DNA from: Rebecca billardiae RCC1528 | Taxonomy: Eukaryota > Protista > Haptophyta | DNA length: 64,000 bases | NCBI GenBank assembly: GCA_965240325.2 | Contig: OZ251226.1 | Coordinates: 930,001 to 994,000 of the forward strand | Direction of reading: 5' to 3' | In this document: positions 18,596-42,845 of the stretch, in pieces | Layout of the letters: each line of letters begins with the position of its first letter | Position numbering within the stretch: position 1 is the stretch's first letter | Translations under genes and position numbers: made by a program | Notes under the pieces: model-generated | The model's input: only the letters and a program-made list of their open reading frames with translations | Database searches by the model: none | What the model was told of the DNA's origin: nothing

Positions 18596-19735
18596 TAAGT
18601 GATAACGTTCCAGGTGCATAGATAGAGCGCGCGAGTCGGCAGTCGCGTGGCTTATGGCGCCTGGCTGTCGTCTGAGTGACTGAGAGTCTGTCTGTGAGTC
18701 GATACTGTAATATAAAGTGTAATTACGTACTAATAAAGTACTATAGACAGATGACGCCAGTCACGAGAGCTCGGAGTCCACAGTGAGTCTGACTCTGAGA
18801 GGTCTGAGAGGAGTCTCTGAGAGGACTGCTCATGATGTCCGAACTGTCGGACACTGATTGTGATGCGGTTGGACCAACCTGGTGAGCATGCCGCATGGCG
18901 ATGTCCCACCGTCGATCAACCGTGACCGTCCTGTCGAGTGTCGTGCGGGCCCACATGCTGGCAACCCTGTGAGTGTGACACGGCATGGCGAGTGACTCGC
19001 GGCAGCTCGGGTGAGTCTGGTGTGAGCTCCGCGCCGCGGGATCGCCCTTCATTCATCTTCGATCTCCTGCATACGCGGGGCCGCTGCCGTCGGCGCGCCG
19101 CTGGTGCTCGCCCCCTCGGCTCCACTCGCCCCCTCGTGCCGAGCGCCTCGCCTGTCAGCCTAGTACTAAGTGATAACGTTCCAGGTGCATAGATAGAGCG
19201 CGCGAGTCGGCAGTCGCGTGGCTTATGGCGCCTGGCTGTCGTCTGAGTGACTGAGAGTCTGTCTGTGAGTCGATACTGTAATATAAAGTGTAATTACGTA
19301 CTAATAAAGTACTATAGACAGATGACGCCAGTCACGAGAGCTCGGAGTCCACAGTATGAGTAGTGAGTCTGACTCTGAGAGGTCTGAGAGGAGTCTCTGA
19401 GAGGACTGCTCATGATGTCCGAACTGTCGGACACTGATTGTGATGCGGTTGGACCAACCTGGTGAGCATGCCGCATGGCGATGTCCCACCGTCGATCAAC
19501 CGTGACCGTCCTGTCGAGTGTCGTGCGGGCCCACATGCTGGCAACCCTGTGACACGGCATGGCGAGTGACTCGCGGCAGCTCGGGTGAGTCTGGTGTGAG
19601 CTCCGCGCCGCGGGATCGCCCTTCATTCATCTTCGATCTCCTGCATACGCGGGGCCGCTGCCGTCGGCGCGCCGCTGGTGCTCGCCCCCTCGGCTCCACT
19701 CGCCCCCTCGTGCCGAGCGCCTCGCCTGTCAGCCT
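18596..19735. repeat. Direct tandem duplication of ~570 bp (18596-19161 and 19167-19735) containing the NudC 3' end and 3' flank
   Basis: 'taagtgataacgttccaggtgc...' starts at 18596 and 19167. By eye the copies are identical except for a 9-nt and a 6-nt indel. Confidence 0.95.
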
Positions 19736-21093
19736 GTGCGCCATGGGCGTGTGAGCCAGCGCCCCTCGCGGGCATTGGGGGCAAGGGCATGTCCCCGCCA
19801 GCCCCGGGCAGGCTCTCCCCGGTCAGCTTCACCTTGGAGGGGTCGAAGGGCATGCCCTTGAACGGCGAGCCATCCGCATTCCAGGCCTGCGCGTGCGTGA
19901 CGCATGGGGGTGCGCCGGGTGCGCCAAGCCGGGCGGGAGGCGGGGTGCGCGGCACGGCACTGTCAGCCCGGTGCGCGCACGCTCGGGTGGGCAGCGCTGC
20001 AACGCGCTTCGGCGCTCGGCGCACCTCCTTGATCTTCTCCAGATTCTGCAGCTCGTCCGAGGTCGGCAGCCCCTTCCGCTTCTGGTCCTGGTCGAACATG
20101 ATCTTGCGGATCGCGCCCTGCGTCTCGCCGTCGTACTCCTCGACGCGCTTGACCGAGTCCACCTTGGTTGTGTCGATCTCGACGTGGCCGTGCAGCGCGG
20201 ACTTCCACCAGGACTCGCGCTCCTTCTCGAGGTAGATGGTGCACTTCCCGTCCGCGACGTTCCAGAACGACTGCTCCGTCTTCACCTGCTCCCAGATGCA
20301 CTGGTTATTCCGGTCGTCGCACGGGTAGTCGTCGTCGAGCAGCGCCGTCTCCGCGCCCTTCAGCTGCAGCTGGAGGTGCCGCCGCCCAATCACGCAGAGG
20401 ATGTCGCGGGAGCGCGTGCCCTCGGGCAGCGGCACGGCGATCGTCACGTCGGCTATCGTCTGCTCCCACACGTACTTGTCCGTCTGCCCTCCGTTGTACG
20501 TCGACTCGAGCGCCATCGCATTCTTGACGTGCGTCGACGACGCCGCGTTCTCGTCAAGCTGCGAGGCCGAGATGACGCGCGCGCCCGAGCTCTCGCCCTC
20601 CTTGGCCGGCGGCCCTGAGGGCTTGGCGGCGCTGGTAGCGGGGCCACTGGTGGTGCCTTCGCCAGCACTCGGAGCGGCGCTCGCCGTCGGCTTGTCCGAG
20701 CCACCGCCGTGCGCTGCGGCTGCCGGCTTGGTGGACGCCACCTTGCCTGTTGCGGCTGCTCCCGTGCTGCGCGCCTTGGCAGCCATCGCCTGGTACTTGC
20801 GGAAGTGGCCGAGCACGAGCTTCTCGGCGACGCCCGGCGCAAACCCCATGTTCTCGCCCTCCTGCATCACGTGGTAGAAGTCGGTCTTGCGGTAGAGGAA
20901 GCTGAAGAATGCGTCGAGCAGTGGCCCGATTCCGCCGCTGCGCTGCGCGATCATCATGAAGAGCTGCGCACGCGCATGGGAGGAGCGAGCGCGGTGGCGC
21001 ACGGTCGGGCGTCAGAAGATCGCAACAGCAGTGGCGGCGGCGCGCCGCGCCGCCCCCTTCGCGCACCTCGTCGTGCTCCATCCCGCTACCCAT
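19623..21093 (-). CDS. nudC: NudC family (nuclear movement protein, CS/p23 domain co-chaperone); introns 20964-21066 and 19887-20024
   Basis: NudC_N motif 'LLDAFFSFLYRKTDFY'. CS domain 'NGGQTDKYVWEQTIADV'. C-terminal 'ETQGAIRKIMFDQDQKRKGLPTSDE' and 'AWNADGSPFKG' (NUDCD3-like). Confidence 0.92.
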
Positions 21094-21567: not shown

Positions 21568-24156
21568 TCAGGACGATGACGACGACTGCACCAAGTCGCG
21601 TGCCAACCCTTCTGCAAAGCGTGCGTTGCTCGCGGCTGAGCCAGATGCACCGCTGTAGTCCTCGTAGCTCACGCGCACGACCTGCCAGCCCAACGATTCG
21701 AGCACGCGCGTCTTCCACTGGCTGGGCCCGTTGAGCCGCTGCGCGCCCGTCCACGGGTCGGTCACGAAGTGGGACGGCCCATCGTACTCCACAACCACCT
21801 TGGACGCGGTGCACGCCATGTCCACGACGAGCAGCCCGCCCTCGCCGATGCGCACCTCCTCCTCGTGCGCCCAGCCGCACTCTGCGAGCGCGCGAGACAG
21901 CGCCCGCTGCGATGACGACGAGCGCACCCGTGATACTCGGTCACGAAGCAGCTGGCTACCGAGGCACTGCGCCAGCATGGACTCCACACGCGTGCGTGCG
22001 GTGCCAACGGGCAGGCGTGCATCGGCGTGCAGCGTGAGCAGTGCCTGCGCCACATTGATGTGCGCCTCGAGCGCGAGTTGCGCTTGCAGCCCAGATGCAG
22101 CAAGGAGTCGCTCGCACAGGGACAGCAGAAGCTGCCGATGCGCCATGTGCTGGCCAGCCGTCGCATATGCCCACGCCGTGTTGGCCAGCTCCTGCGCATT
22201 GAACTCCCCCACGCGCGCCTCGGCCTCCCGCGCGATCGCGCCATACAGCGCGGGCGCGTCCACGCCCGCTGTGGCGTACGCCCACGCCGTGTTGGCCATG
22301 TTCTGCGGCTTGAACTCGCCCACACGCGCCTCGGCCTCCCGCGCGATCGCGCCATACAGCGCGGGCGCGTCCACGCCAGCTGTGGCGTACGCCCACGCCG
22401 TGTTGGCCAGCCCCTGAGCATTGAACTCGCCCACGCGCGCCTCCGCCTCCCGCGCGATCGCGCCATACAGCGCGGGTGCGTCCACGCCCGCTGTGGCGTA
22501 CGCCCACGCCGTGTTGGCCAGCTCCTGCGCATTGAACTCGCCCACACGCGCCTCGGCCTCCCGCGCGATCGCGCCATACAGCGCGGGTGCGTCCACGCCA
22601 GCTGTGGCGTACGCCCACGCCGTGTTGGCCATGTTCTGCGCATTGAACTCGCCCACGCGCGCCTCGGCCTCCCGCGCGATCGCGCCATACAGCGCGGGTG
22701 CGTCCACGCCCGCTGTGGCGTACGCCCACGCCGTGTTGGCCATGTTCTGCGGCTTGAACTCGCCCACACGCGCCTCGGCCTCCCGCGCGATCGCGCCATA
22801 CAGCGCGGGCGCGTCCACGCCCGCTGTGGCGTACGCCCACGCCGTGTTGGCCAGCCCCTGCGCATTGAACTCGCCCACGCGCGCCTCGGCCTCCCGCGCG
22901 ATCGCGCCATACAGCGCGGGTGCGTCCACGCCAGCTGTGGCGTACGCCCACGCCGTGTTGGCCAGCTCCTGCGGCTTGAACTCGCCCACACGCGCCTCGG
23001 CCTCCCGCGCGATCGCGCCATACAGCGCGGGTGCGTTCACGCCAGCTGTGGCGTACGCCCACGCCGTGCTGGCCAGCCCCTGCGCCTTGAACTCGCCCAC
23101 GCGCGCCTCGGCCTCCCGCGCGATCGCGCCATACAGCGCGGGTGCGTCCACGCCAGCTGTGGCGTACGCCCACGCCGTGTTGGCCATGTTCTGCGCATTG
23201 AACTCGCCCACACGCGCCTCGGCCTCCCGCGCGATCGCGCCATACAGCGCGGGCGCGTCCACGCCCGCTGTGGCGTACGCCCACGCCGTGTTGGCCAGCC
23301 CCTGCGCATTGAACTCGCCCACGCGCGCCTCCGCCTCCCGCGCGATCGCGCCATACAGCGCGGGTGCGTCCACGCCCGCTGTGGCGTACGCCCACGCCGT
23401 GTTGGCCAGCCCCTGCGCATTGAGCTCGCCCACACGCGCCTCGGCCTCCCGCGCGATCGCGCCATACAGCGCGGGCGCGTCCACGCCCGCTGTGGCGTAC
23501 GCCCACGCCGTGTTGGCCAGCCCCTGCGCATTGAACTCGCCCACGCGCGCCTCGGCCTGGCGCGCGATCGCGCCATACAGCGCGGGTGCGGCTACACCAG
23601 CTGTGGCGCACGCCCACGCCATGTTGGCCAGCTCCTGCTCATTGAACTCGCCCACGCGCGCCTCGGCCTCCCGAGCGATCGCGCCGAATGTGCGCTCGGC
23701 ACCGCACTTGGTCGGCCGGAGCTTGGCCAGGCCGTGCGCTAGGTTAGCCACTTGGCGGGCGCTATACGGCGAGCCGTCGACTGCCGTGGCCTCCAGCCGC
23801 CGCTCCACGCGCGCGAGCAGCGCGCCAAAGCGCTTGTCGGTGCGCAGTGCGTGGCCGCGCAACGTGCGCGCGTTGCGACCCAGTCGAGAGATGGCTGTAG
23901 CGTCGTTCACCGGGTCGAACGCGTGGCCATGCGTAGCGCACACATCGAGGATGCGTTTCGCGTCACGTGCATCCGTGAGCTGCCGGTTGATCATTTTGTT
24001 GTCTGGCCGGCGTGATGGGCCGTTTGTGTGCATCGCCGCCCGTAGCGCAGCACAGGCGAGTGCGGGCGAAGGCGGCATGCGCGCTCGCAACCCATACGCG
24101 TTGCGCGGGCATGCGCCCGCACTGGTGCTCACCAACCGCCCTAACAGCCCGAGCAT
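21568..24156 (-). CDS. HPR/OPR-type 37-aa repeat protein with C-terminal RAP domain, paralogue 1 (13.5 repeats, ~862 aa, intronless)
   Basis: Arg/Ala/Leu-rich, acid-free leader MLGLLGRLVSTS. 14 repeat starts at exact 111-bp spacing with consensus FNAQxLANTAWAYATAGVDAPALYGAIAREAEARVGE. RAP motif 'VDMAC..KVVVEYDGPSHF...KTRVLESLGWQVVRVSY'. Confidence 0.92.
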   Translation of the reverse strand: MLGLLGRLVSTSAGACPRNAYGLRARMPPSPALACAALRAAMHTNGPSRRPDNKMINRQLTDARDAKRILDVCATHGHAFDPVNDATAISRLGRNARTLRGHALRTDKRFGALLARVERRLEATAVDGSPYSARQVANLAHGLAKLRPTKCGAERTFGAIAREAEARVGEFNEQELANMAWACATAGVAAPALYGAIARQAEARVGEFNAQGLANTAWAYATAGVDAPALYGAIAREAEARVGELNAQGLANTAWAYATAGVDAPALYGAIAREAEARVGEFNAQGLANTAWAYATAGVDAPALYGAIAREAEARVGEFNAQNMANTAWAYATAGVDAPALYGAIAREAEARVGEFKAQGLASTAWAYATAGVNAPALYGAIAREAEARVGEFKPQELANTAWAYATAGVDAPALYGAIAREAEARVGEFNAQGLANTAWAYATAGVDAPALYGAIAREAEARVGEFKPQNMANTAWAYATAGVDAPALYGAIAREAEARVGEFNAQNMANTAWAYATAGVDAPALYGAIAREAEARVGEFNAQELANTAWAYATAGVDAPALYGAIAREAEARVGEFNAQGLANTAWAYATAGVDAPALYGAIAREAEARVGEFKPQNMANTAWAYATAGVDAPALYGAIAREAEARVGEFNAQELANTAWAYATAGQHMAHRQLLLSLCERLLAASGLQAQLALEAHINVAQALLTLHADARLPVGTARTRVESMLAQCLGSQLLRDRVSRVRSSSSQRALSRALAECGWAHEEEVRIGEGGLLVVDMACTASKVVVEYDGPSHFVTDPWTGAQRLNGPSQWKTRVLESLGWQVVRVSYEDYSGASGSAASNARFAEGLARDLVQSSSSS
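22155..23685 (-). repeat. 111-bp coding tandem array (13.5 units)
   Basis: The unit recurs with exact 111-bp phase from 22201 to 23644 (13 x 111). Confidence 0.97.
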
Positions 24157-24620
24157 CCTTCTCCAGGCCGGCCCCGTGCGCCGCGACGCCGCGTGGAAGA
24201 CGACCCCGCGTCTCCAGCTGCAGCCGTGTACGTCGGACCAACCCGCATTCGTCATCGATCGACACGATGGCGGCCAAATCCTCCGGCGGCCGTCTCACTT
24301 ATTCGTACTCGTCACGTCGGTCAAGTGCTGCACGCGTGCAGGTGCGCCTGCTGCCACGGCTCGCGCCGCACGTGCGCGCTGCGCTCGAATAAACGGGCGC
24401 GCTGCTGGGCGAGAACGAGCCGAGGGATGCGGCTCGCGCGTGCATTGCTGCGGCGAGCCCCGCCCCAGCTACTCTAACTGTCTGTGGCGGCGGCCGGCGG
24501 CGGGGTCAATCGCCGGCACTGCCGGGCCGGAGTCGGCCAGCCGAGGCGTCGGCATCCGCGTAGTCGGGCGATTACGACCGCTATCGCTGCTGGAGCCGGA
24601 TACTAGGCGCGGGCCTGACA

Positions 24621-27600
24621 CTACGACCTGACGCTGATGCTCGGCTTGCTGCTGCTGCTGCTGCTAGACACGCCGTCGCCGCCGTCACCGCCAGACGAGG
24701 CGCGGAACTCAGTGTCGGCGAGGTGGAGCAGCGGTCGGCTGAGGCGCTCGTGCACGAGCATGAGCTGTGCGAACTGCGCGCGCGCAGGGCGGGGCGGGGC
24801 GAGGGGCCCGCGGCGCTCAGCAGCCGAGGCGTCGCGCGGGGCGCGCGCGGCGTGTCGCGCGGCGCGCGCGGCGGCCGCGGCCGCGCACCGCTGCCTTGAG
24901 CGCGGCCGCGGACGAGGCCGCGTACGGCGCGGTCTGCTGCGCGAAGCGCTCGAGGGCGGGGAGCACGATGAGCAGCGTGGCGCGGCGGTGCGCGAGCAGC
25001 CGGTCGGCGAACGCGCGCAGCTCGCCCCACAGCTCGGGCATCGCGTCGGCGAGCGACGGCCCGTGCTGGCGCTCGTGCGCGGCCGCGGCGCCGACGCGCG
25101 CAGCAAACGCGGCGGTCGCGGCGGCCATGTCGCGCGCCCACACGTGCAGCTCCTTCGCGTGCGCGAGGATCGCCTCGCGCTGCGTGACCGCCGCGCGGTC
25201 GGCGGCGAGCCGCTCCTCCTCCTGCGTCGCGCGCCCGCGCGCCGTCGGCGCGTGCAGCCGCCGCTCGCCCGAGCCGCGTGCGCCGCCGTACTTGCCGAGC
25301 AGCGCCGGCAAGACCGGCTTGCCGCCGCCGAGCGCGTGAGCGTCGTCGAGCGGCGTGCGGCCGAACGCGTCCTCGGCGTTGACGTTGATTCCGGGCTGGG
25401 TGAGCAGGAAGTAGACGCAGCCCTCGTGCCCCGTCGACACCGCCACGTGCAGCGGCGTGCGGCCGAACGCGTCCGCGGCGTTCACCTCGCACCTGCACTG
25501 GAGCAGTCGGCCGAGCGCGGCCGTGTCGTGCGCAAACGCCGCGTGGTTGAGCCTTCGCGCGGCGTCGAGCGCGCCGAGCGGCGCGTTGGCGTGGAGGAGG
25601 CGGTGGAAGCAGGCCTCGTGCCCGCCGAGCAGCGCGTCCTGCAGCGGGGTCATCCCGTTCACGTCCGTCGCGTCCACGCGCGCGCCCAGCTCGAGCAGCA
25701 CCTCGATGTTGGCGCTCACGCCGTCCGCGGCCGCGATGTGCAGTGCGGTGCGGCCGGCCGCGTCGGTCGCGTTGATCTCGACTCGGCACGGGCCCATCGC
25801 GCGGAGCTCGGCGCCGGCGGCGGGGTCGCGCGCCATCGCGAAGAGGAGCTGCTGCCAGAGCGAGCCCGAGCCGCACGTGCCGCCGTGCCCCGCCAGCAGC
25901 TCCGCGCAGCCGATGTGCTTGGCGCGCAGCGCGTCGAGCAGCGGCGTGCTCCCCGACGCGTCGGCCGCGTCGACAGCGGCGCGATGCGCCAGCAGGACTT
26001 TGATCACTGTCGCGTGCCCGCCGCACGCGGCGAGGTGGAGGGCGGTGCGGCCGAGGAAGTCGGCGCCGTCGACGTCGGCGTGCGCCGAGTGCAGTAGTCG
26101 CTGCACCTTCCTCACGTCGCCCGCAGCGCACGCGAGGCACAGCCGCATGTGCTGCAGGTTTGCCTGCTTGCGCCGCGCAGAAGCGACCACCTGCGACACA
26201 GCACGCGGTGCGCGCGGTGCGCGCGGCGCGCGAGGCGCGTTGGTCGCGCGCGCGGGGTGAAGGGGCGCGCGGCGGAGAGGCCGGCCGGCGGCCCGGGGCG
26301 AGGGCTGCGCGCGCGCGGCGCGCACGCCGCGCGCACCGCCTGCAGCATGTCGCTCTCGCCGCCGCCGTCCGCGTCCTTGGCGCCCACGTCGACGCTGCCC
26401 GAGTCTGAGCGACCGTCGAGCTCGGCGCCGTCGGCCGGCGCGCCGCCGGCGCCGACGAGCGAGGCGCGGCGCGCGACGGAGCGCGCGGAGCGCGCGGTGA
26501 GCGTGCCGTCGGCATCCGCATCGCTCGCGGACATCGCGTTGTCCATCACCACGTCCGCCTGCCCCGGGAACGTCTCGACCAGCTCCTTGTACGCCTCGGC
26601 GGTGAGCACAAGCACGCGCGTCTCCTGGACCGGCAGCGTGCGCGCGCTGCACACGTGCCGCGTGCCGAAGACGAAGGAGAGCTCGCCGAGCGGCTCGCCG
26701 CGCGTGCGCACGTCGAGGACGGCGTGCTCGCCGTCGTCCACCTCGACGTACATCTCGACCGCGCCGTGCGAGACGAAGAGCAGCTCGGTGCACGCCTCGC
26801 CCGCGCGGAAGAGCGCACTGTCCGCGTCGAGCGCGCGAGACGACAGCATCGACGCGAGCCGCGAGCAGAAGCCGTGCGAGCAGCCGGAGAGCAGCTGCGA
26901 GGCCTCGAGGATCGGGCGGGTGGTGTACGCGGCGATGTCGATCTGCAGCGCCATCGGCAGCCCGGAGTAGATCTCCTCGTCGCGCACGTCACTCAGCGAC
27001 TCCGCCTGCAGCCGCGTGATGAAGAACTTGGACATGCGCGCCTTGAGCGAGAGCGGCACGCGCGCGTGCTTGATGAAGGACTGCACGAGCTCGAGCTGCG
27101 CGCGCTTGGCGACGATGTCGTCGTCCTGCCGCATCACGAGGCCGGAGATCTGGCCGACCGTCCACGCGTACACGGTCATGTTGAGCAGCATCAGCGAGAT
27201 CACGAAGCCGATCTCGAGTGCGTTGGTCGGCACGGTCGACAGACCGATTGTGGACATCACGGAGAGAACGAAGAAGACATCCAGCACCCACGCGTCCGCG
27301 AGCGTCTCGAGCGGCGACGCGCCGAGCCGCGCGCTCGCGCCGACCGCCTCGCGCTGCAGCGCGTCGACGCCGGACCACGAGGTGCCGTACTCGGCGCTGA
27401 TCAGCTCGTTGTGCCCGAGCACATGCCACACGCACGCACTCAGGTGCAGCGCGAGAACGAGGACAAGGATGTAGTGCCCGATCCCCTCGGCGACCGCGGT
27501 GTCCTTGAGCCGGTGCCGCCAGCGCAGGTAGGCAGACAGCGTCGCGCGCGCGTTCACCAGGCGGAGGAGCCGGAGCACGAACGCGGCGATGGGCTCGGCG

Positions 27601-28661
27601 CCGAGCGCCCAGATGAACGCCTCGAACGGGAAGTTGGCCAGGAGGTCGAGAGAGAAGGCGGAGTGGAGGTAGTGCTCGCGGATCGCGCCGAGCTCGAACA
27701 CCTCCACCGAGGATTCGTTCACGTACGAGGTGACGAAGCGGAGGCCCATCCGGCCCCAGTACAGCGCGTCAATGCACAGCGTGAGCGTGCGCAGGTGGGG
27801 CATGCGCAGGGTGTGCTCGGCGTACGCGAGCTGCACGGGCACCAAGAAAATGTCCAGCACCGTGAGCGTGAGGAACGCGGCGTGCAAACGCCGCGCGAGC
27901 GCGCCGCGCGCCGAGATGACGAACCACGGCCGGCCAGCGTCGAGAGCAGACGCGCCGCCGCCCGCGCCCGCCGGCCGCAGGCCGTCGCCGAGCTCGGCGG
28001 CGGGCGTGGGCGCGCCGCCGCCGCCGCCGCGGAGCTGCCGCGCCGCCGCGCCGGTCTCGCCGTGCAGCGCCGCGCAGAGCCGTGCCCAAGACACCTCCTC
28101 CGCCTCGTGCTCGCCCGCCGCCGCCTCGTCGCCCTCGGCCTCGCCGCCGCCGCCGCCGCCGCCGCGCGCCGTGCCCGCCGCGCTGCGGGGCTCGGCCGGC
28201 AGCGCGCCGTCGCGCGGCGCCACGTCAAGCCGCAGCTGCTCGGCGCACCAGCGGCGCACGTCGGCGACGCTCGTGTCCGGGTGTGTCGCGACCGAGCGTA
28301 AGACGAGCGCGTGCAGCGTACCCGCCTCCGCGCGCTCGCCCAGCCGCAGCCGGCCCGTGTCCGCGCGCGTCTGGATGGCGCGCGCGATCGCAGCGCGCGT
28401 GCGCGGTAGCGCGAGCGCGCGCGACAGCTCGGCAAACGGCTTGTCGCCGCCGTGCGGCCGCTCGGCCGAGCCGGTGGGCGGCGCGGAGAGGGAAGCTGCG
28501 GTCGGCGGCGTGGACGTGACGTCCGCAAGCCCCGAGCACCCCGCGCCGCCGCCGCCGCCGCCCGCCGCGCGCCCGGGCTCGTGCAGCGCGCTCAGGCTGA
28601 GCGCCATCGCGCCGCCCTGCGGCGGCGACGCGGCGGGCTCGGGCTCGGCGACGGTCGCGCA

Positions 28662-28696
<35 letters not shown>

Positions 28697-31600
28697 CCTC
28701 CGCGCCGTCCGCGTGTGCACCGTCGGGCTCTGCGATGCTGCCACTCATGATCCACACTGCCGTCCCGAGCAGGAACTGCTCCACGTTCACCGCGCGCGCG
28801 TTGAGCCGCGCGCCGCGCGACACCTGCGCCGCGCCAACGCTCGCCGGCGCGCCCAGCTCCAGGCCAAGGGGCTGCACGCGCGGCGCGGACGCGGGCGCGC
28901 TGTCGAGCGCGCCGGTGGCATCGTCGGCGGGCGCGCGCGCCGAGCCGGGCGCGTCGGCCAGCGCCGCGGGCGTGCCCGCGGCGCCCGCGCCCGCTGCGCC
29001 GCCCGCCGCGCCAGCCCGCCCACCCTGCTCCTCTTCCTCCCCCGCAGGCGCCTCCTCCTCCGCCGCCTCCGCCTCCGCCTCCTTGCCGCTGTCGAGCGCA
29101 AGAGACGCGACCAGCGCTGCGTCGAGACGGCCGCCGAGCGCGCCAAAGGCCGGCGAGCCGCCGCCGTGGGAGGACTCGCGGCTGCGGCTGGCGGAGGAGT
29201 CGCGCGCGCCGGGCGCGACGCCGAATGCGACGCGCACGCCGCTCGAGCCCGCCGAGCCCGCCAGCGCCGCCGCCGCCGCCGCCGCCGCCTCCAGCTTGGC
29301 CTGCGCCGTCGTGGTGGGCACAATGGCCGCCTGCGCGAGCAGCCGGTGAAGACCCTTCACGTCCGCGCCGCCCATCTCGCCGACCTGCCGCTGCACGGCG
29401 CGCACCTTGCTCAGGCGCACGCTCGTCGACTGGCCCGCGGCGAACACGCGAAACAGCCGCAGCATCACGCCCACGGCGAGCGCCACCTGCGCCGCCGCCG
29501 TGCGCTCGTGCGCGCCGCCGTCGCCGCCAGCCGGCGCGCCGGCGGCCGAAACCGGCTCGGCCGCCGAGCGCGTCGACGCCTCGTCCACCTCGGAGTCGAG
29601 CGGCGAGGAAGGGCGCATCGACGGGCGCACGGCGGCGAGGAGCCCGCCCAGGTAGTTGCTCCGCCCGCGGCTCGGGCGCGAGAACCGCCCCCCTGCCGCC
29701 GCCGGCTCGCCCGCCGGCGGCGCGCCGCCGTCGGCGCCGGAGCCGGCGAGCCGGCGCCGCGCGGTCGGCGTGCCAAGCGCGCCATCGAGCCCATCGCCGC
29801 CCTTGCCCGCCGAGCGCATCGCGTCGACGAAGGGCTTGGAGGTGAAGAGCACGGCGAAGCCGCTCGCCGCGAGACTGGCGGGCGCGTCCGCCTCGCCGCC
29901 GACCCCCGCCGAGCTGCCCGCCGTGTGCGTCCGCCCGCGCCGCACCTCACCCTGGCTTCCCATCAGGCCACCACCCTGCGAGCTGAACGCTGCGGAGCCT
30001 GCGCGGCCGTGCCGCTGCCGGCCGAGCAGGCCCTTCCACCGCCCGCCCTCCGCGCCGCCGCGTGCGTGGCTGAGCGGCGTGGACTCGAGCGCGCCGTCGC
30101 ACGAGCCGACGCACGACGCCGACCGCCCCGGCTGCCCCGCGCCGCCGCCGCCGTGCGTGGCCGCGCGCGCGAAACGTTGGGCGTCCGCGGCGCACGCCCA
30201 GTCGGCGCTGCGCGACACGGCGCCGCCGCCGCCGCCGCCGCCGCCGAGGGGCAGCGGCGGCGCCGGCTCGGCGCGCGAGTGCCGCCCACCCCCGGCAGCC
30301 CCGCCGCCGAGCAGCTCGTCGGCCGGCGGCGGCCCGCCGTGCGAGCGCATGTACAGATTGCCCGCGCGCACCGAGCTCGAAGACCGGAAGACACCGGACG
30401 AGCGCGAGCGCGAGCGCGAGCGGCGCGCGCGGCGCGCGCCGCCGAGCGAGGGCGGCACCGCGGTGCCGGCGGCGCCGGCGGCGCCGGAGAGGCGCTCGGT
30501 GAGCTCGTCGGCGACGGCGCGCGCGGTCTCGCCGTCGAGCCCGAGCGCGTCCACCAGCATCCGCTCGAGCGCCGCGCCCTCCTCGACCAGCCCGCGCGCG
30601 CCGCGCAGCGCTCTGTCGTACAGCGCTCGGAGCGCGCACAGCCCGGCCTCCGCGCGCGAGAGCTGCAGCACGACGCGGACGAAGTCCTTCGCCTCCGAGC
30701 CGCCGGGCTGCGGCTCGTCCGAGTCAGAGGAGCCGTCGTCGGAGCGCGCCCCCGAGCCGCCGCGCCCGGCGCCGCCCTCCTCCTCGCCCTCCTCCTCCTC
30801 CTCGTCCTCCAGCCCATACAAGTCCACCCAGCCGTCTGCGCGCGGCCCGAGCGTGGCCAGCAGTTCGCGGCCGTCGCGCGCGAGCGCGCGCACGGTCTTG
30901 GCGGAGGCCTGCAGCGAGACGTCGATCTCGTGCTCGAGGGCGAGGCGCTGCTTCGCCGCCGCGCCCGCGCGCTTCTGCACCGCGTTCAGCGTCTGCATCA
31001 GCGTGAGCGAGCTGAGCCCCTGCGCGACCGCCAGCGCCGCGCTCAGCGTCTCGTCCTGCGCCGCCTCCGCGCGCGCGCCCTCCGCGTCCGCGTACATCAG
31101 CAGCAGGGCGGCGAGCTGCGCGTCGGCCTCGAGCGCGTACGCGACGGGCGTGCGTCCCCACTTGTCCCGGACCGACGGGTCCGCCATCGAGGCGAGCAGC
31201 AGGTGCGCGGCGGAGAGCGAGCGCGCCGCGACCGCCGCGTGCAGCGCCGTGCGGCCATCATAATCGGCGCGGTCGACGTCATACCCGTAGCTCACGATGA
31301 ACTTGATCTTGGGGAGGTTCGCCGAGCGCGCGGAGAGCGCGAGCTGCTCGGCGAGCGTCTCGTCGGACGCGGTCGCGGTGTACCGCACGAGCAGCTGCGC
31401 GACGAGCAGGTGCTCGTGCCGGATCGCCTCGTCGAGCGGCGTGCGGCCCCACCGGTCGGCCGCGTTCACGTCAGCGCCGTGTGTCACGAGGAACTCTGTC
31501 ACGCGCGACGAGCCGAGCGTCGCGGCGATGTGCAGCGCGGACGCGCCGTCGTGGTCGCGCGCGTCCGCGTCCACGCCGTTCTGGATGAGCAGCCCCATCA

Positions 31601-33928
31601 GCGCCGTGTCCGTGCCGCGCGTCGCGGCGTGCAGCCGCGCCGCGCCGTCGCCGATCTCGAGCGCCGCGCCGCTCGCCTCGAGGAGCGCCGCCACCGCGCC
31701 GTGCCTCGCGCCGACGGCGAGCTGCACGGGCGTGCTGCCCCAGCGGTCGCGGCAGTTGACGTCCGCGCCGGCCTCGACGAGGAAGGCGACGACGGCGTTG
31801 TTCCCCGACGCCGCGGCGAGGTGGAGCGCCGTGCGCGCGTCGAAGTCGCGCGTGTCCACCGCGTAGCCGCGCGCGAGCAGCAGCCGCATGCCCTCGACGT
31901 CGTTCGCCGCGACCGCAGCGCTCATCTCGCTGAGGCTCTGCTCGTGCCGCGCGAGGATGGCGCGGCGGATGGCGGCCTTCTGCTCCTGCAGCTCCTTGAG
32001 CTCGTCTTCGTCCAGCGTGCCCGCGCGCTCGCCCTCGAGCGCGCCCACGTCGTTCCCCTCCTGGTCGAGCCCGTACTTTCGCAGAAACGTCGTGAGCACG
32101 GTCGCCTTCTCCTCCGGGAACGAGGCGAGGACGCGCTCGTACGACTCTTTCGAGAGCACGATCAGCGTGACGTCGCCGCCCGCCGACGCCTTCACCGTGT
32201 GCGGCTGCTGCACGCCGAGCAGGAACGCCACCTCGCCCACCAGCTGGCCCGGCCCGAAGTCCGAGCGGATCGTGCTGACGTACTTGTCGCCCTTGAACGT
32301 GTCGAGCGCGCCCGCCGCGCACCACAGCAGCTCGGTCGAGCCGTCGCCGCGGCAGAAGAGCACCTCGCGCGGCAGCACGAAGCGCTCGTGCAGCAGCAGC
32401 ACGAGCGACGAGTGCAGCTGCGCCGAGCAGCCGCGGAAGAGCCACGAGTGCGCGAGCTCGCGCGCGTACTGCGCCGTCGCCACGTCGGTGCGCATCGAGA
32501 GCGGCATCTTGGCGAAGATCTTGGCGGTGCCCGCCGCCTGCTTGCGGTGCTGGAAGGCGTAGTACTCGACGATGCGCGCGGCGAGCGCGGGCGGCAGCCG
32601 GCGCTCCTTGCCGTACCGCTCGGCGGCCTGCTGCACCACCTTGTGGTGCAGCACGTTCTGGTCGACGCGGATGAGGAAGTGCAGCAGCGTGCCGAACACG
32701 AACGCGTAGAAGACGATCTGCGCGAGCGCGGCGAGCACGGCGAGCCACACCTCGAGCCGCGCGCTGATCACCAGGTTGCCGTACCCGAGCGCTGCGGAGG
32801 GGAGGGGGGGGGCGCGTGGCCGGAGGGCCGACGCGAGGGGCGCGGAGGGGAGGCGGGGGTGGTGAGGAGCGGGGCGAGCGGTGGCGCGGGGGGGGAAGGG
32901 GGCGCGGAGAAGGCGCCGCGAGGGGCGCGTGGGTGGTGCGGGGGTGGCGCGCCACGGGCCGCGCGCGCGCGCGCGCTCGACGCACCGGTCATCCCCGCCC
33001 AGCCCATGTACGACGAGAGGAGGTAGCTCTGCGTGCCGCTGAGCGACTCGGGCGCGAAGCGCTCGTTGCGCGTGACGAGCGAGATCTGCGCCGCCCACGA
33101 CGGCAGCTCGACCACCTCCTGCCCGCGCTTCGCCACCGCCCACCAAAAGCAGCCGACCCAGTGCGGCACGGAGAGCAGCACGACGAAGAACTTGAACAGC
33201 CCGACGAGCGACGCGCTGGTCGCAAGGTCGTTGTTGAGCTTCTCGATGTACCGGTAGAGCTGGCGCACGCGCGTCAGCCGGAGCACCTGCGCCGCGAGCC
33301 ACAGCTCGATGCCGCCGCCGAGCAGGAAGACCACGCGCGCGAGGTGCAGCAGCACCGCACCCGCCCAGTCGAGCGCCGCGCGCTTCGAGCGGTAGTAGCG
33401 GCCGCGGCCCTCGTCGGCCTGAAGCTCGGAGGGCTCGCTCGTGGTCGCGACCAGGATGGAGGGCAGCTGCGCGCGCACCACCACCATCTCGATCGAGAGC
33501 AGCTCGAGGCAGTCCACCAGCAGGTCGACCACGGTGAGCGCGCCCGACTCGACCGTCGCCACCGGGAACGCGACGCGCAGCGGGATCAGCACCTCCTCGT
33601 ACAGCAGGATGGGGAGGCGGACGAGCTTGGAGCGCGCGGCGAGGCGCGCGCGCAGCGCGTGGTCCCACTCGAGGCCGTCGTCCGCCGCCTCGTCAGCCTC
33701 GTCGCCCGCGACGATCACCTGCCGCCACGTCACGCGCCGCCGGCCGCCGCCGTTGCCCGCGCGCGCGCCCGCGCGGCTGTCGCGCAGGATGCCGCCCATG
33801 ACGGGACCGTGCGGCGGTCTCGGCCCCTTTGCACCGTCCGCGACGTCCACCGCGCTCTCCGTCGCGCCCGGCGCCGGCTTGACCGTCGCCGCCCAGCGTG
33901 TCCCAAGCAGCACCGTCGACCAGCCCAT
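24621..33928 (-). CDS. Giant (~2950 aa) tandem channel: [6TM pore GYG + cNMP + ankyrin] - low-complexity linker - [6TM pore + cNMP + ankyrin]; exons 33928-32986, 32791-26337, 26190-24889, 24773-24621
   Basis: Module 1: S4 'VLRLTRVRQL', spliced pore 'MTALGYGN', C-linker, cNMP 'GQLVGEVAFL' and ankyrin repeats 'DFDARTALHLAA'. Module 2: 'FSLDLLANFPF', S4 'VLRLLRLVN', pore 'VMSTIGLS', cNMP 'LGELSFVFG' and ankyrins 'GRTALHLAA'. Three GT-AG introns keep the frame (8853 nt total). Confidence 0.85.
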
Positions 33929-37562: not shown

Positions 37563-37704
37563 ATAGGAGACGATACTTTACTCTTTGAATTGGAATCAGC
37601 AAACCAAAAGTGTATATCAGCAGGAGAATCACGATAGGAGACGATACTTTACTCTTTGAATTGGAATCAGCAAACCAAAAGTGTATATCAGCAGGAGAAT
37701 CACG
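37563..37704. repeat. Exact 71-bp tandem duplication in an AT-rich island
   Basis: 'ataggagacgatactttactc...aggagaatcacg' occurs at 37563 and 37634. Confidence 0.95.
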
Positions 37705-38580
37705 AACGGCCCACCATAATTATCAGAAAGATGCAGACGCCTTTGTCCTATTCGAGTTCGATTTCTTCTATTACTTACTATCCAAGGATTAAGGAGCAGT
37801 ACAAACGCAATCATGAGCAGCGATATCGAGTCAAATGCGGATTTCACACCTAAATCCACCTACAAAAATCCCCCAAATCCTGCGCGCATCCTCTTTTTTG
37901 ATTTTGCGGAGCACGTGCGCCGCCCCCCCCGGCTTTCGCTCACGCTCAGACCTTTCGGGGGGCCGTGCGCCATTATAGCATATCAGCATCAGCGATCGCC
38001 GATATATATACGCGGCGCGAAGTGCCGCGAACGCGGCATGAAAACAATTCCCCCGCATCCCCACTGGGCGGAAGTGCGGACGGGTTACGGTAACGCCGAA
38101 AATCGATTTCTTTACTGTGTATCACATATATATTTAACGACGTAGCATGCAACGCCGGGCAGGCGTCAGATGACAGAGTCAGCTGAGCTGGCACGGCAGC
38201 AGAAGTCGAGCAGCGGCGACCGGACAGTCACAGCAGTATTTAATTCTGCGATTATAATATTTGTTTAAACTATTATTTGATATATTATAATAAACTACGT
38301 AGTTATTGTCCGCGCATTTATTGCCGCCAACAGCGGTGAGTCCGTGTTCGAACCGCCAGTAGCAGCGCGACGACGGCAGGCCGATAATGGGCGCGCCCTA
38401 GTATCATACTGTACTTGTAGCCTTAGAGAGAGAGTAAGAGCCAGCTACTGAGCTAGAGAAAGTGCGCGCACTGCGCTGCCACTGTCTTGGACCCAGCCAC
38501 AAGACCCAGCGCCCAGAGTACGTCGTGTCATCGACCCAGCCACTGATGTCATGATTAGTAGAAGTAAAACAGCTTCGTCG

Positions 38581-41058
38581 TCAAGACGATGACGACGACT
38601 GCACCAAGTCGCGTGCCAACCCTCCTGCAAAGCGTGCGTTGCTCGCGGCTGAGCCAGATGCACCGCTGTAGTCCGCGTAGCTCACGCGCACGACCTGCCA
38701 GCCCAACGATTCGAGCACGCGCGTCTTCCACTGGCTGGGCCCGTTGAGCCGCTGCGCGCCCGTCCACGGGTCGGTCACGAAGTGGGACGGCCCATCGTAC
38801 TCCACAGCCACCTTGGACGCGGCGCACGCCATGTCCACGACGAGCAGCCCGCCCTCGCCGATGCGCACCTCCTCCTCGTGCGCCCAGCCGCACTCTGCGA
38901 GCGCGCGAGACAGCGCCCGCTGCGATGACGACGAGCGCACCCGTGACACTCGGTCACGAAGCAGCTGGCTACCGAGGCACTGCGCCAGCATGGACTCTAC
39001 ACGCGTGCGTGCGGTGCCAACGGGCAGGCGTGCATCGGCGTGCAGCGTGATCAGTGCCTGCGCCACATTGATGTGCCCCTCGAGCGCGAGTTGCGCTTGC
39101 ACCCCAGATGCAGCAAGGAGTCGCTCGCACAGGGACAGCAGAAGCTGCCGATGCTCCATGTGCTGGCCAGCCGTCGCATACGCCCACACCGTGTTGGCCA
39201 TGCTCTGCGCATTGAACTCGCCCACGCGCACCTCAGCCTCCCGCGCGATCGCACCATACAGCGCGGGTGCGTCCACGCCCGCTGTGGCGTACGCCCACGC
39301 CGTGTTGGCCATGTTCTGCGCATTGAACTCGCCCACGCGCGCCTCGGCCTCCCGCGCGAATGCGCCATACAGCGCGGGTGCGTCCACGCCAGCTGTGGCG
39401 TACGCCCACGCCGTGCTGGCCAGCTCCTGCGCATTGAACTCGCCCACACGCGCCTCGGCCTCCCGCGCGATCGCGCCATACAGCGCGGGCGCGTCCACGC
39501 CCGCTGTGGCGTACGCCCACGCCGTGTTGGCCAGCCCCTGCGCATTGAACTCGCCCACGCGCGCCTCGGCCTCCCGCGCGATCGCGCCATACAGCGCGGG
39601 TGCGTCCACGCCCGCTGTGGCGTACGCCCACGCCGTGTTGGCCAGCTCCTGCGGCTTGAACTCGCCCACACGCGCCTCGGCCTCCCGCGCGATCGCGCCA
39701 TACAGCGCGGGTGCGTCCACGCCAGCTGTGGCGTACGCCCACGCCGTGCTGGCCAGCCCCTGCGCCTTGAACTCGCCCACGCGCGCCTCGGCCTCCCGCG
39801 CGATCGCGCCATACAGCGCGGGTGCGTCCACGCCCGCTGTGGCGTACGCCCACGCCGTGTTGGCCATGTTCTGCGCATTGAACTCGCCCACACGCGCCTC
39901 GGCCTCCCGCGCGATCGCGCCATACAGCGCGGGCGCGTCCACGCCCGCTGTGGCGTACGCCCACGCCGTGTTGGCCAGCCCCTGCGGCTTGAACTCGCCC
40001 ACGCGCGCCTCCGCCTCCCGCGCGATCGCGCCATACAGCGCGGGTGCGTCCACGCCAGCTGTGGCGTACGCCCACGCCGTGTTGGCTAGCTCCTGCGCAT
40101 TGAACTCGCCCACGCGCGCCTCGGCCTCCCGCGCGATCGCGCCATACAGCGCGGGTGCGTCCACGCCAGCTGTGGCGTACGCCCACGCCGTGTTGGCCAT
40201 GTTCTGCGCATTGAACTCGCCAACGCGCGCCTCGGCCTCCCGCGCGATCGCGCCATACAGCGCGGGTGCGTCCACGCCAGCTGTGGCGTACGCCCACGCC
40301 GTGTTGGCCAGCTCCTGCGGCTTGAACTCGCCCACGCGCGCCTCGGCCTCCCGCGCGAATGCGCCATACAGCGCGGGTGCGTCCACGCCCGCTGTGGCGT
40401 ACGCCCACGCCGTGTTGGCCAGCTCCTGCGCATTGAACTCCCCCACGCGCGCCTCGGCCTCCCGCGCGATCGCGCCATACAGCGCGGGCACGTCCATGCC
40501 CGCTGTGGCGTACGCCCAAGCCATGTTGGCCATGTTCTGCGCATTGAACTCGCCCACGCGCGCCTCGGCCTCCCGCGCGATCGCGCCGAATGTGCGCTCG
40601 GCACCGCACTTCGTCGGCCGCAGCTTGGCCAGGCCGTGCGCTAGGTTAGCCACTTGGCGGGCGCTATACGGCGAGCCGTCGACTGCCTTGCCCTCCAGCC
40701 GCCGCTCCACGCGCGCGAGCAGGGCGCCAAAGGGCTTGTCGGTGCGCAGTGCGTGGCCGCGCAACGTGCGCGCGTTGCGACCCAGTCGAGACATGGCTGT
40801 AGCCTCGTTCACCGGGTTGAACGCGTGGCCATGCGTAGCGCACACATCGAGGATGCGTTTCGCGTCACGTGCATCCATGAGCTGCTGGTTAATCATCTTG
40901 TTATCTGGCCGGCGTGATGGGCCGCCAGCGTGCATCGTCGCCCGTAGCGCAGCACAGGCGAGTGCGGGCGAAGGCGGCATGCGCTCTCGCAGCCCATACG
41001 CGCTACGCGGGCATGTGGCCGAAGTGGTGCTCACCAACCGCCCTAACAGCCCGAGCAT
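38581..41058 (-). CDS. HPR/OPR-type 37-aa repeat protein with C-terminal RAP domain, paralogue 2 (12.5 repeats, ~825 aa, intronless)
   Basis: Same leader, repeat consensus and RAP domain as 21568-24156. 13 repeat starts at 111-bp spacing (39214-40546). Confidence 0.92.
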   Translation of the reverse strand: MLGLLGRLVSTTSATCPRSAYGLRERMPPSPALACAALRATMHAGGPSRRPDNKMINQQLMDARDAKRILDVCATHGHAFNPVNEATAMSRLGRNARTLRGHALRTDKPFGALLARVERRLEGKAVDGSPYSARQVANLAHGLAKLRPTKCGAERTFGAIAREAEARVGEFNAQNMANMAWAYATAGMDVPALYGAIAREAEARVGEFNAQELANTAWAYATAGVDAPALYGAFAREAEARVGEFKPQELANTAWAYATAGVDAPALYGAIAREAEARVGEFNAQNMANTAWAYATAGVDAPALYGAIAREAEARVGEFNAQELANTAWAYATAGVDAPALYGAIAREAEARVGEFKPQGLANTAWAYATAGVDAPALYGAIAREAEARVGEFNAQNMANTAWAYATAGVDAPALYGAIAREAEARVGEFKAQGLASTAWAYATAGVDAPALYGAIAREAEARVGEFKPQELANTAWAYATAGVDAPALYGAIAREAEARVGEFNAQGLANTAWAYATAGVDAPALYGAIAREAEARVGEFNAQELASTAWAYATAGVDAPALYGAFAREAEARVGEFNAQNMANTAWAYATAGVDAPALYGAIAREAEVRVGEFNAQSMANTVWAYATAGQHMEHRQLLLSLCERLLAASGVQAQLALEGHINVAQALITLHADARLPVGTARTRVESMLAQCLGSQLLRDRVSRVRSSSSQRALSRALAECGWAHEEEVRIGEGGLLVVDMACAASKVAVEYDGPSHFVTDPWTGAQRLNGPSQWKTRVLESLGWQVVRVSYADYSGASGSAASNARFAGGLARDLVQSSSSS
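39170..40587 (-). repeat. 111-bp coding tandem array (12.5 units)
   Basis: Exact 111-bp periodicity (12 x 111 between 39214 and 40546). Confidence 0.97.
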
Positions 41059-41384
41059 CCTTCTCCAGGCCGGCCCCGTGCGCCGCGACGCCGCGTGGAA
41101 GACGACGCCTGCGTCCCCTCCCGTGCTGCTCCCAAAGTTCCAACACGGTCCCTCGTCATCGACACGATGGCGGCCAATCGGGTTCACTGGATCAGGGGCT
41201 TCGGGCTGGAATGCTGGATATGCTAATCGCATCCATGCCGTCCCGGGAGTTCGGCGCACAGCCAGTGCAGTACTTGTAGTGCGCTCGCAGGACGGCGCCC
41301 GACCGGATCTCGGGGCACTCGAAGCGGCCGAGGCGGATCGTGCCGGCATCGCCGAGCGCGGCCTCGCTGATCTGTCCGCTGCGA

Positions 41385-42845
41385 ATGGCACCGTCTGCGG
41401 CTGGCGACGACCGCGGTCGCTCCGAAGCAGCTATCATCGCCAGCGCCTGCGTTCTCTGTATGGTCGGGCCATTCTCGGGGCAGCTGTTCGCTCCGTCGCT
41501 CCCAGCGATGGCGGAGGCGATCGGTGGGGGCTCCATCGGTGTCATCCAGCTCTCGATGAGCGCCTACACCATCGCCTTTGGCACTGCCCACCTGCCCGCA
41601 GGTGCGGTGTCGGACGTGTACGGGCGCGCGCCGGTGCTCGCCTTTGGTATCGGCCTGTACGCGCTCGCTTCGCTGGCGTGCCCCATGGTGGCGACGGCCA
41701 GGCAGCTGATAGTAGTGCGCTTCTTCCACGGCGCCGGTGCCGCGGCCATCTCCATCACTGGGCCCGCGTCCTTGCGCGACCTCCTAGAGTCGCCCGCTGC
41801 GCGGCAGCGCTCGATGGCGCGCGTGATCATGGCGCGGCAGACGGCCACATTCAGCTCGCCCGCGATCGGCTCGCTCGTGGCGGGCGTCCTCGGGTGGCGC
41901 TGGGTTCTTGGCCTGTACGTGCTGGTTGGCGCCTTGGCTGTGGCCGCCGCGGTGGTCCTGGTCCCACCCCTGCGCGCCAGCCATGCCCAGAAGCTCGCAG
42001 GCGAGACGGCTGCGGGCGGCACGATGGCGCTTGGCCCGGGCGCTCCGCGCAGACTCACGTGCGCGGCCATCGCTCGGCCGTTCCGCGCCCTGCTCGTTGA
42101 CCGCGCCTTCGTAGCGTACGTACTCGCCGACTCGTTCTCCCTCGCCGTGAGCCAGACCTACTCGCAAGCGGCGAGCTACGTCTTCCAGAGCTACTACGGC
42201 CTCGGGCTCGGCGGGTATGCAGTCTGGATGACACTCGTGCCCCTCTGCGTGGTTGGAGGCGTCAAGCTGACGGCGGTGGCGAGGAACGCGCTCCGCGGCG
42301 GCAATACGCGCGTGGTCAGGGCAGCCCTGCTGGCTTCCATCGGCAACGAGGCCCTGCTCCTTGCGCTGTTGCTCGTGCTGCCGCCGCACGCCGCAGCGGC
42401 ATGGTTCGCGTTTGGCTCGTTCCATTTGCTTTTCCAGGGCGTGCGCGGCATGCTCACCACGGCAGCGCAGACTATGGTCGTCGAGCTCAGCCCTGGCAAC
42501 ACGGGCAGCGCGCTGGCGTTGCTCTTCTTCGTGCGCTACGCGCTGATCACAGTCTCTGCGTACGCGATCGGCGCCCTGTACGACAGCGACTGGTGCGTGG
42601 TGGGCGCGCCTGTGCCAACTGCTGGCTTGTTTCTAGGTACTCTCGTGCTAGGCCTGATGGCATTCGACTGCTTCCGCCCACGCGGGCTGGCGGACCACAG
42701 CGCCGCGCCAGAGGCCGCCACGCCGGAGGCCGCCGCGCCGGAGGCCGCCGCGCCGGCTGCATCACCGGGTACTGCCCTGCTAGAGAGCAGGCCGCAGAGC
42801 CCGCTCCTTCATCACGTGTCTCATGCCCCCAGCTCGGCCAGCTGA
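41385..42845 (+). CDS. MFS drug:H+ antiporter (Bcr/CflA, DHA1-like)
   Basis: 'LFAPSLPAMA', MFS motif A 'GAVSDVYGRAPVL', 'LIVVRFFHGAG' and 'SPAIGSLVAGVLGWRW'. About 12 hydrophobic segments; intronless. Confidence 0.88.
   Translation: MAPSAAGDDRGRSEAAIIASACVLCMVGPFSGQLFAPSLPAMAEAIGGGSIGVIQLSMSAYTIAFGTAHLPAGAVSDVYGRAPVLAFGIGLYALASLACPMVATARQLIVVRFFHGAGAAAISITGPASLRDLLESPAARQRSMARVIMARQTATFSSPAIGSLVAGVLGWRWVLGLYVLVGALAVAAAVVLVPPLRASHAQKLAGETAAGGTMALGPGAPRRLTCAAIARPFRALLVDRAFVAYVLADSFSLAVSQTYSQAASYVFQSYYGLGLGGYAVWMTLVPLCVVGGVKLTAVARNALRGGNTRVVRAALLASIGNEALLLALLLVLPPHAAAAWFAFGSFHLLFQGVRGMLTTAAQTMVVELSPGNTGSALALLFFVRYALITVSAYAIGALYDSDWCVVGAPVPTAGLFLGTLVLGLMAFDCFRPRGLADHSAAPEAATPEAAAPEAAAPAASPGTALLESRPQSPLLHHVSHAPSSAS

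Follow-up and report, generated by a model that had tools for sequence, protein, structure and literature searches.

A near-uniform heptatricopeptide repeat array with a hypervariable patch, followed by a RAP domain, in the haptophyte Rebecca billardiae

RESULTS

Overview

We analyzed a 64,000-nucleotide stretch of DNA from the haptophyte Rebecca billardiae RCC1528 (contig OZ251226.1, positions 930,001 to 994,000; here called the window, in which all positions below are counted). Our subject is a minus-strand gene, gene A, whose product carries an array of 13 near-identical 37-residue helical repeat units followed by a C-terminal RAP domain, and which belongs to the known family of heptatricopeptide repeat (HPR) proteins. 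The family, the fusion to RAP, and the 37-residue repeat are already known; what is unusual is the uniformity of the units, which resembles that of transcription activator-like (TAL) effectors, together with amino acid variation confined to a short patch. As a whole, these observations are best explained, at a probability of about 0.6, by a nuclear gene for an organelle-targeted HPR and RAP protein in which the patch residues would pick the RNA sequence.

Recurrent amino acid variation in array A is confined to a short patch

Tandem Repeats Finder (TRF) identified an array at 22169-23685 made up of 13.7 copies of a 111-bp period, with matches at 93% and indels at 0%. The patches of successive units, read by unit-by-unit translation from the N to the C terminus, were NEQEL, NAQGL (three times), NAQNM, KAQGL (with N25S), KPQEL, NAQGL, KPQNM, NAQNM, NAQEL, NAQGL, KPQNM, and NAQEL. 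This reproduces exactly the list in an earlier note on this DNA, which had proposed an invariant scaffold with a hypervariable patch. Recurrent amino acid variation among the 13 units was found at positions 19 (N/K), 20 (A/P), 22 (G/N/E), and 23 (L/M). The substitution N25S occurred once in array A and twice in the array of a neighboring paralog and was recurrent only with the two arrays pooled. Recurrent synonymous variation was found at codons 11, 14, 33, and 37 of array A, and at codon 6 in addition when the arrays were pooled.

For the 23 core units of both arrays together, we calculated the within-array pairwise ratio of non-synonymous to synonymous polymorphism (pN/pS), which was 3.4 in the four patch codons versus 0.11 in the other 33 codons. 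Of the recurrent polymorphic nucleotide sites, six of six were non-synonymous in the patch and two of seven in the remainder of the unit (Fisher P = 0.02), and the four most variable positions of the unit fell within a 5-residue window (P ∼0.002 versus chance). The earlier picture of an invariant scaffold and a variable patch is thus borne out, and the patch behaves as if diversifying selection acts on its codons. The cassettes that encode NM, EL, and GL differ by at most 4 nucleotides, and each was seen both with NA and with KP.

Two further regularities in array A concern sites other than the patch. At unit column 42 of the array (22144-23586), the synonymous alternatives CGC and CGT in the codon for Arg14, a CpG site, alternate strictly (C, T, C, T) across the 13 units. 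Scaffold differences were also fewer at even than at odd unit lags, which amounts to a weak 222-bp higher-order repeat. The amino acid patch does not track this period, and the array of the paralog does not have it.

The patch signal replicates in a neighboring paralog

Paralog B lies ∼17 kb from gene A on the same strand, and the patch signal replicates in it. The unit types are the same as those of array A, and their order is different. Units 4 to 7 of array A form a collinear block with units 6 to 9 of array B, in which the paired units differ by 1, 1, 1, and 0 nucleotides, and the units on either side of this block are rearranged. Synonymous divergence between the flanks of the two genes was just 0.07 on the N-terminal side and 0.02 on the C-terminal side, which indicates that the arrays change faster than the flanks gain point substitutions.

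The same pattern is found in low-divergence arrays of other organisms

We examined 155 homologs with at least 6 in-register units from other organisms and defined as low-divergence those arrays with a mean unit identity of at least 0.70 (n = 25). Position 22 was the single most variable site in 12 of the 25 low-divergence arrays, where ∼0.7 arrays would be expected by chance, and it was among the top two variable sites in 15. The mean entropy across these arrays was 1.67 bits at position 22 and 1.26 bits at position 19 (all others, ≤1.09). Five residues (E, D, N, A, and G) accounted for 93% of 329 units at position 22, and N, K, T, S, and D predominated at position 19. In the DNA of three metagenomic homologs, the pN/pS of positions 19 and 22 was 1.53 versus 0.34 for the rest.

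Hypervariability of positions 19 and 22 as a unique property of the whole divergent family was a broader possibility, which we rejected. Across the wider family, positions 9, 16, 36, and 2 were as variable as 19 and 22, and the signal at these two positions is therefore specific to arrays with a uniform scaffold.

Gene A belongs to the HPR family

The 37-residue repeat profile DUF1601 (Pfam PF07671) matched the gene A protein with 83.8 bits (cutoff, 25). The RAP profile (PF08373) scored 30.0 bits on the whole protein and 33.1 bits on the C-terminal piece alone (cutoff, 24.2), and the Vsr-like profile DUF559 scored 21.7 and 25.3 bits, respectively (cutoff, 20.6); MTES_1575 was a weak, sub-threshold match to the RAP region. 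A word-indexed search with the gene A protein returned 634 homologs, the named ones coming from haptophytes (Phaeocystis, Chrysotila, Pavlovales), pelagophytes, diatoms, dinoflagellates, and Plasmodiophora. Their annotations name them RAP domain proteins and list PF26188 (RESC6), PF06743 (FAST_1), and PF08373. The best HPR homologs were those of haptophytes and pelagophytes, at ∼50% identity. An exhaustive search found 8,492 representative clusters at an E value of ≤0.001 and 1,042 at ≤1e-30, none of them above 57% identity.

From the Pfam and homolog matches, we identify the repeat as the heptatricopeptide repeat of Hillebrand et al. 2018 (PMC6212722), and the array consists, as expected for an HPR, of tandem 37-residue helix-turn-helix units (111 bp, no indels, two predicted helices per unit). 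By our own mapping onto the published spacing, unit positions 19, 20, 22, and 23 correspond to HPR positions 4, 5, 7, and 8, that is, to the residue ahead of "helix A" and the first turn of "helix A." HPRs have also been recognized to carry OPR motifs and have been placed in the OPR family (PMC13126933). Judged by its sequence, the gene A protein is a member of a known family, with HPR/DUF1601/RESC6-like, FASTK-like repeats and a RAP domain. By the same comparison, this combination of repeat and RAP is the ordinary layout of the large HPR family and no special fusion of the kind seen in TAL effector nucleases (TALENs).

Three other assignments were tried and rejected. OPR units in the strict sense have 38 to 40 residues and a PPPEW motif; those of gene A have exactly 37, with GVDAPALY at the junction between units. 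TAL effector membership was rejected on the unit length of 37 residues, on the absence of any TAL Pfam match at E values up to 1, and on homologs and fold matches that were all HPR, OPR, or RESC proteins. For pentatricopeptide repeat (PPR) proteins, there was no PPR Pfam match, and the likeness to PPR10 was at fold level only (template modeling [TM] score, 0.35 to 0.38).

The predicted structure places the patch at the start of the second helix

We modeled residues 88 to 895 of the gene A protein with AlphaFold2 from an 84-sequence alignment. In the model (predicted local distance difference test [pLDDT], 91.6; predicted TM score, 0.86), the units are regular pairs of helices and the C-terminal domain is alpha/beta, with the RAP strands and helices predicted at model residues 711 to 806. 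Each unit is predicted to consist of a helix (positions 1 to 13), a short turn (14 to 19), a second helix (20 to 33), and a four-residue link (34 to 37). With the second helix starting at position 20, position 19 would be the N-cap, position 20 N1, and position 22 N3.

In a sequence search of the Protein Data Bank (PDB) with phmmer, RESC6 was the best solved match (E value, 1.6e-25), aligned repeat by repeat. Foldseek against the PDB also found RESC6 (E value, 9e-13; TM score on the target, 0.73), as well as several HPR and RAP proteins of the Toxoplasma gondii mitoribosome and OPR proteins of the Chlamydomonas and Polytomella mitoribosomes. Further Foldseek matches were ASA2, PPR10 (E value, 4.8e-5), and the FAST1-FAST2-RAP module of FASTKD4. 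Pfam, AlphaFold, and Foldseek thus agree with the earlier description of a helical repeat array joined to a RAP domain of the Vsr-like, PD-(D/E)XK-related type.

In a helical-wheel projection, the hydrophobic stripe formed by L23, A24, A27, W28, and A31 is on the side opposite to position 22, which shares its exposed face with N25 and A29, both almost invariant. The invariant Q21 adjoins this face, and the other helix is where the wider family has its charged and variable residues. Together with the length of the loop, the wheel suggests that positions 19 and 22 face the concave groove, as a candidate arrangement only.

Organization of gene A and the surrounding sequence

The maximal minus-strand open reading frame (ORF) of gene A is intact and spans 21568..24255 (895 residues). 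Homology between gene A and paralog B begins at 24212, so the two genes do not have Met1 of this ORF in common, and the earliest methionine present in both is Met34. Translation therefore likely starts at Met34 (24156), which is also the upper coordinate given in the earlier note. Residues 34 to 87 contain 8 K/R versus 1 D/E (isoelectric point [pI], 11.6) and, from this composition, probably act as an organelle-targeting peptide.

Two to three degenerate repeats precede the array (Table 1). The hairpins at residues 88 to 186 have pLDDT values of 84 to 97 and align to RESC6 repeats in the PDB sequence search. Within them, at residues 113 to 186, we located both of the sequences that had previously been quoted as cryptic repeats, and AlphaFold predicts helical hairpins there. 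A terminal half repeat had also been described, but the last unit retains 34 of 37 residues and is not a half repeat. C-terminal to the array lies the motif VVDMAC...VVVEYDGPSHF, which corresponds to the D..ExDGxxH signature reported earlier, and the assignment to RAP holds at the 30.0 bits of the profile search. In 84 homologs, conservation is 90% or higher in the RAP columns D, E, G, P, H, K, and R; the corresponding residues of gene A are D812, E823, G826, P827, H829, K848, and R850.

TABLE 1 Features of gene A and paralog B in the window (aa, residues of the 895-residue ORF)
Feature	Position	Strand	Remarks and evidence
Gene A coding sequence	21568..24156	minus	862 aa from Met34; no intron needed; stop codon 21568-21570; ORF list, homology, Pfam DUF1601 and RAP
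Gene A basic presequence, aa 34-87	23995..24156	minus	Precedes first predicted solenoid helix
Gene A degenerate ("cryptic") helical hairpins, aa 88-186	23698..23994	minus	Contain FDPVNDATAISRLGR and YSARQVANLAHGLAKL; AlphaFold helix pairs
Gene A first unit, semi-degenerate, 37 aa, aa 187-223	23587..23697	minus	Patch N-E-Q-E-L
Gene A 13 near-identical 37-aa HPR units, aa 224-704	22144..23586	minus	TRF, column table, AlphaFold pLDDT 97-98
Gene A non-repeat helical linker from array to RAP fold, aa 705-795	21871..22143	minus	AlphaFold helices, lower pLDDT of 54-70
Gene A RAP/Vsr-like alpha-beta domain, aa 796-895	21571..21870	minus	D812, E823, D825, G826, H829, K848; Pfam, AlphaFold
Paralog B	38581..41058	minus	Flanks ∼95% nucleotide identity to gene A; Pfam DUF1601 and RAP matches
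Paralog B 111-bp array	39179..40587	minus	TRF period 111, 12.7 copies, 93% matches

Several other features lie near the two genes. A NudC-like gene (19623-21002, minus strand) lies ∼0.6 kb past the 3′ end of gene A and, in an Atlas search that yielded no close relative, matched clusters with Nudc_N and CS domains; the C-terminal part of its ORF looks like read-through into an intron or untranslated region. Directly downstream of it are two near-identical minus-strand ORFs of ∼104 residues (18741-19052 and 19312-19626; MKGDPAARSSHQTHPSCRESLAMPCH...), ∼570 bp apart, which look like a short dispersed or tandem repeat element. Between gene A and paralog B, the minus strand carries an ORF of 2,518 residues (26112-33668) whose translation, judged by eye, resembles ankyrin repeats, cyclic-nucleotide-binding-like segments, and ion-channel-like membrane segments. 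About 0.9 kb past the 3′ end of paralog B, at 37563-37705, there is a perfect tandem duplication (71 bp × 2, 100% identity) with a G+C content below that of its surroundings. A plus-strand ORF of 501 residues at 41340-42845 is MFS-transporter-like, and its best database relatives have just 27 to 39% identity, which indicates that the organism is poorly represented in public protein collections.

DISCUSSION

A candidate reader of organellar RNA

In the mechanism that we propose for gene A, the protein would be imported into an organelle, where ∼16 stacked helix-turn-helix units would form an alpha-solenoid whose groove binds a single-stranded RNA of that organelle. Geometry would come from the invariant scaffold, and positions 19 and 22, aided by 20 and 23, would select the RNA sequence. 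The RAP (Vsr-like) domain would then cleave or hold the RNA beside the bound site, leading to processing or stabilization. Tandem gene duplication, with reshuffling or exchange of unit types within the arrays, would give rise to new specificities.

An RNA ligand would be in keeping with what is known of related proteins. The sole family member assayed in vitro, an HPR protein, bound RNA but did not bind DNA (PMC6212722), and in OPR relatives the inner groove holds the 3′ ends of single-stranded rRNA (PMC8660880). Endoribonuclease activity has been reported for the RAP protein FASTKD5 (bioRxiv 10.1101/2024.07.18.603998; PMC12687428). The RAP domain of gene A retains the residues whose conservation in the family is 90% or higher, and it may cleave RNA or may only bind it.

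Positions 19 and 22 are, from the pattern of variation, the best candidates for base-specifying residues, and they can be likened to the specificity positions of PPR proteins, 35 and 5. The earlier note had gone further and proposed a code resembling the repeat-variable diresidues of TAL effectors. The patch statistics, paralog B, and the 25 low-divergence arrays of other organisms speak for such a code, while the helix-capping alphabet and the acidic array discussed below weaken the case, leaving it plausible but unproven. The likeness to TAL effectors and TALENs holds as an analogy of design. It does not extend to descent, since the repeat is an HPR by its DUF1601 score and the joining of repeat and RAP is ordinary in the family. 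Only tentatively, and with less confidence than in sequence-selective RNA binding as such, do we entertain the full form of the idea. This would be a natural programmable RNA reader with one unit per base, a two-residue code at positions 19 and 22, and cassettes exchanged between and within clustered paralogs, in effect an RNA counterpart of TAL effectors joined to a nuclease-fold domain.

Several points weigh against an RNA-reading patch. A textbook helix capping box has N, T, S, or D at the N-cap, P at N1, and E or D at N3. The residues at positions 19, 20, and 22 match this alphabet, and the pattern of the patch may therefore be partly structural; in addition, K19 was paired with E22 in 56 of 71 cases. 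The groove-facing orientation of positions 19 and 22 is a candidate arrangement drawn from the wheel and loop length. Array A is acidic (pI, 4.5; 58 D/E versus 33 K/R), in contrast to the basic grooves of RNA-binding OPR proteins (PMC8660880). The flanks of genes A and B have a pN/pS of 0.7 to 1.0, which derives from few changes and shows no constraint in itself, and FASTKD4 is thought to be non-catalytic (PMC12687428), so that the RAP domain of gene A may not be a nuclease. To these we add the equal variability of other positions across the divergent family and, as taken up below, the short contigs of the one public run and the listing of sequencing runs.

Alternative explanations

The strongest competing explanation, which we nevertheless consider unlikely, is concerted evolution without any code. 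The arrays would then be recent amplifications homogenized by unequal crossing-over or gene conversion, and the patch would be a tolerant helix cap. The protein would be a general HPR-RAP RNA chaperone or scaffold whose specificity lies elsewhere, for example, in the degenerate N-terminal repeats, the RAP region, or partner proteins. The fit of the alphabet at 19 and 22 to helix capping preferences, with the coupling of K19 to E22, and the many equally variable surface positions of the divergent family are in line with this explanation. So are the weak 222-bp period in synonymous sites of array A and the near-identity of the A and B flanks, which implies that the events were recent. Described contacts between OPR proteins and RNA are, moreover, mostly charge based (PMC8660880). 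However, tolerance alone predicts a pN/pS of ∼1, whereas the observed value was 3.4 with no recurrent synonymous site in the patch. The cassettes GGGCTG, GAGCTG, and AACATG occur in all combinations with NA and KP and have been kept in both arrays despite the homogenized scaffold, and the rank of position 22 as the top variable site was found in 12 of 25 independent low-divergence arrays.

A ligand other than RNA seems improbable to us. The array could be a modular peptide or protein binder, a structural subunit, or an organellar DNA binder with a Vsr-like DNase, which would make it a true TALEN-like enzyme. N25, a near-invariant Asn one turn past the variable residue, is reminiscent of peptide-binding armadillo repeats. 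ASA2, a structural subunit of the Polytomella ATP synthase, has the same fold; RESC6 works inside a protein complex; array A is acidic; and RAP resembles the Vsr/DUF559 DNA endonucleases (PMC12687428). Against these stand the in vitro binding to RNA but not DNA described above, the nearest solved relatives, which touch RNA in RESC and in mitoribosomes (PMC12936278; PMC8660880), and FASTKD5, which cuts RNA (bioRxiv 10.1101/2024.07.18.603998).

Least probable of all is an assembly artifact or dead gene, with repeat number and order made by the assembler or an unexpressed ORF. In its favor, Logan contigs of one public run, in which a tenth of the sampled words were present, matched the region only in pieces of 41 to 151 nucleotides with none spanning the array, no RNA sequencing run was among the listed sequencing runs, and DNA of ∼70% G+C readily yields long ORFs. 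Against it, arrays A and B are separate and differ in the order of their units, yet each keeps the reading frame perfectly, consists of exact 111-bp units, and is flanked by intact domains. In addition, the short contigs (from a run that is possibly of the same sample as the assembly) match parts of the array and its junction with the C-terminal region without differences, and hundreds of homologs share the architecture.

Implications

HPR, OPR, and FASTK proteins are major regulators of organellar RNA in apicomplexan parasites, algae, and human mitochondria and, unlike PPR, PUF, and TAL effector proteins, have no known recognition code. Their repeats have been called degenerate, without a reliable motif or code (PMC12691811; bioRxiv 10.64898/2026.01.22.701003; PMC8635915). 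In the literature that we searched, we found no HPR or OPR recognition code, no papers tying HPR or OPR proteins to haptophytes or pelagophytes, and no account of HPR arrays whose units are near-identical and carry a hypervariable patch. The arrays described here are real and replicated and are useful for this open question, while the "code" and any "TALEN-like" activity are plausible but unproven.

A fixed scaffold with two to four varying residues isolates candidate specificity positions and offers a ready consensus scaffold for designer proteins, and paralogs with reshuffled arrays are a natural series in which residues can be correlated with the bases of their targets. If the patch does specify bases, the HPR/OPR/FASTK code would, thanks to the near-consensus scaffold, become directly readable once arrays are paired with their targets, and if RAP is catalytic, these proteins would act in nature as RNA endonucleases guided by sequence. 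Should the patch be only a tolerant helix cap, the finding shrinks to a case of concerted evolution within a family already known.

Comparison with known systems

The closest known systems are the alveolate HPR-RAP proteins (Hillebrand et al. 2018, PMC6212722) and the mammalian FASTK proteins, which share with gene A the 37-residue helix-turn-helix unit with FxPQxLANxxWA, the C-terminal RAP domain, the N-terminal presequence, and a predicted role in organellar RNA metabolism. Alveolate HPR tracts, however, average ∼6 degenerate repeats, whereas gene A has 13 units that are ∼93% identical, with variation confined to four residues. Trypanosoma brucei RESC6 (PDB 8fn4/8fni; PF26188) likewise has 37-residue repeats, which align unit by unit with those of gene A. 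Its repeats are divergent, and it forms a heterodimer with RESC5 in which the 3′ end of the guide RNA is held in a charged crevice (PMC12936278); it does not work as a sequence reader.

Chlamydomonas OPR proteins (the NCL cluster and the mitoribosomal proteins mL115 to mL118) have related helical repeats, with single-stranded RNA in the inner groove (PMC8660880), and the NCL genes are clustered, recently duplicated, and fast diversifying (PMC8226300), comparable to the pair formed by gene A and paralog B. The OPR units differ in being 38 to 40 residues long with PPPEW and degenerate within one protein, compared with 37 residues and a GVDAPALY junction in gene A.

The resemblance to TAL effectors lies in near-identical tandem units, in variation within a short patch at a helix-loop boundary, and in paralogs with reshuffled arrays; as in TALENs, the array is joined, here naturally, to a nuclease-fold domain. 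There is no homology, and TAL units of 33 to 35 residues read double-stranded DNA through residues 12 and 13, whereas the ligand of gene A is most likely RNA and its code would be hypothetical. PPR proteins (PPR10, designer PPRs, and Rf-like clusters) are also alpha-solenoids of helical hairpins, and the candidate residues of gene A share with them a location at the N-cap and first turn of one helix. Rf-like PPRs show diversifying selection at specificity positions in clustered paralogs. PPR units nonetheless have 35 residues versus 37 in gene A, and natural PPR repeats are degenerate, yet theirs is a code that has been established experimentally.

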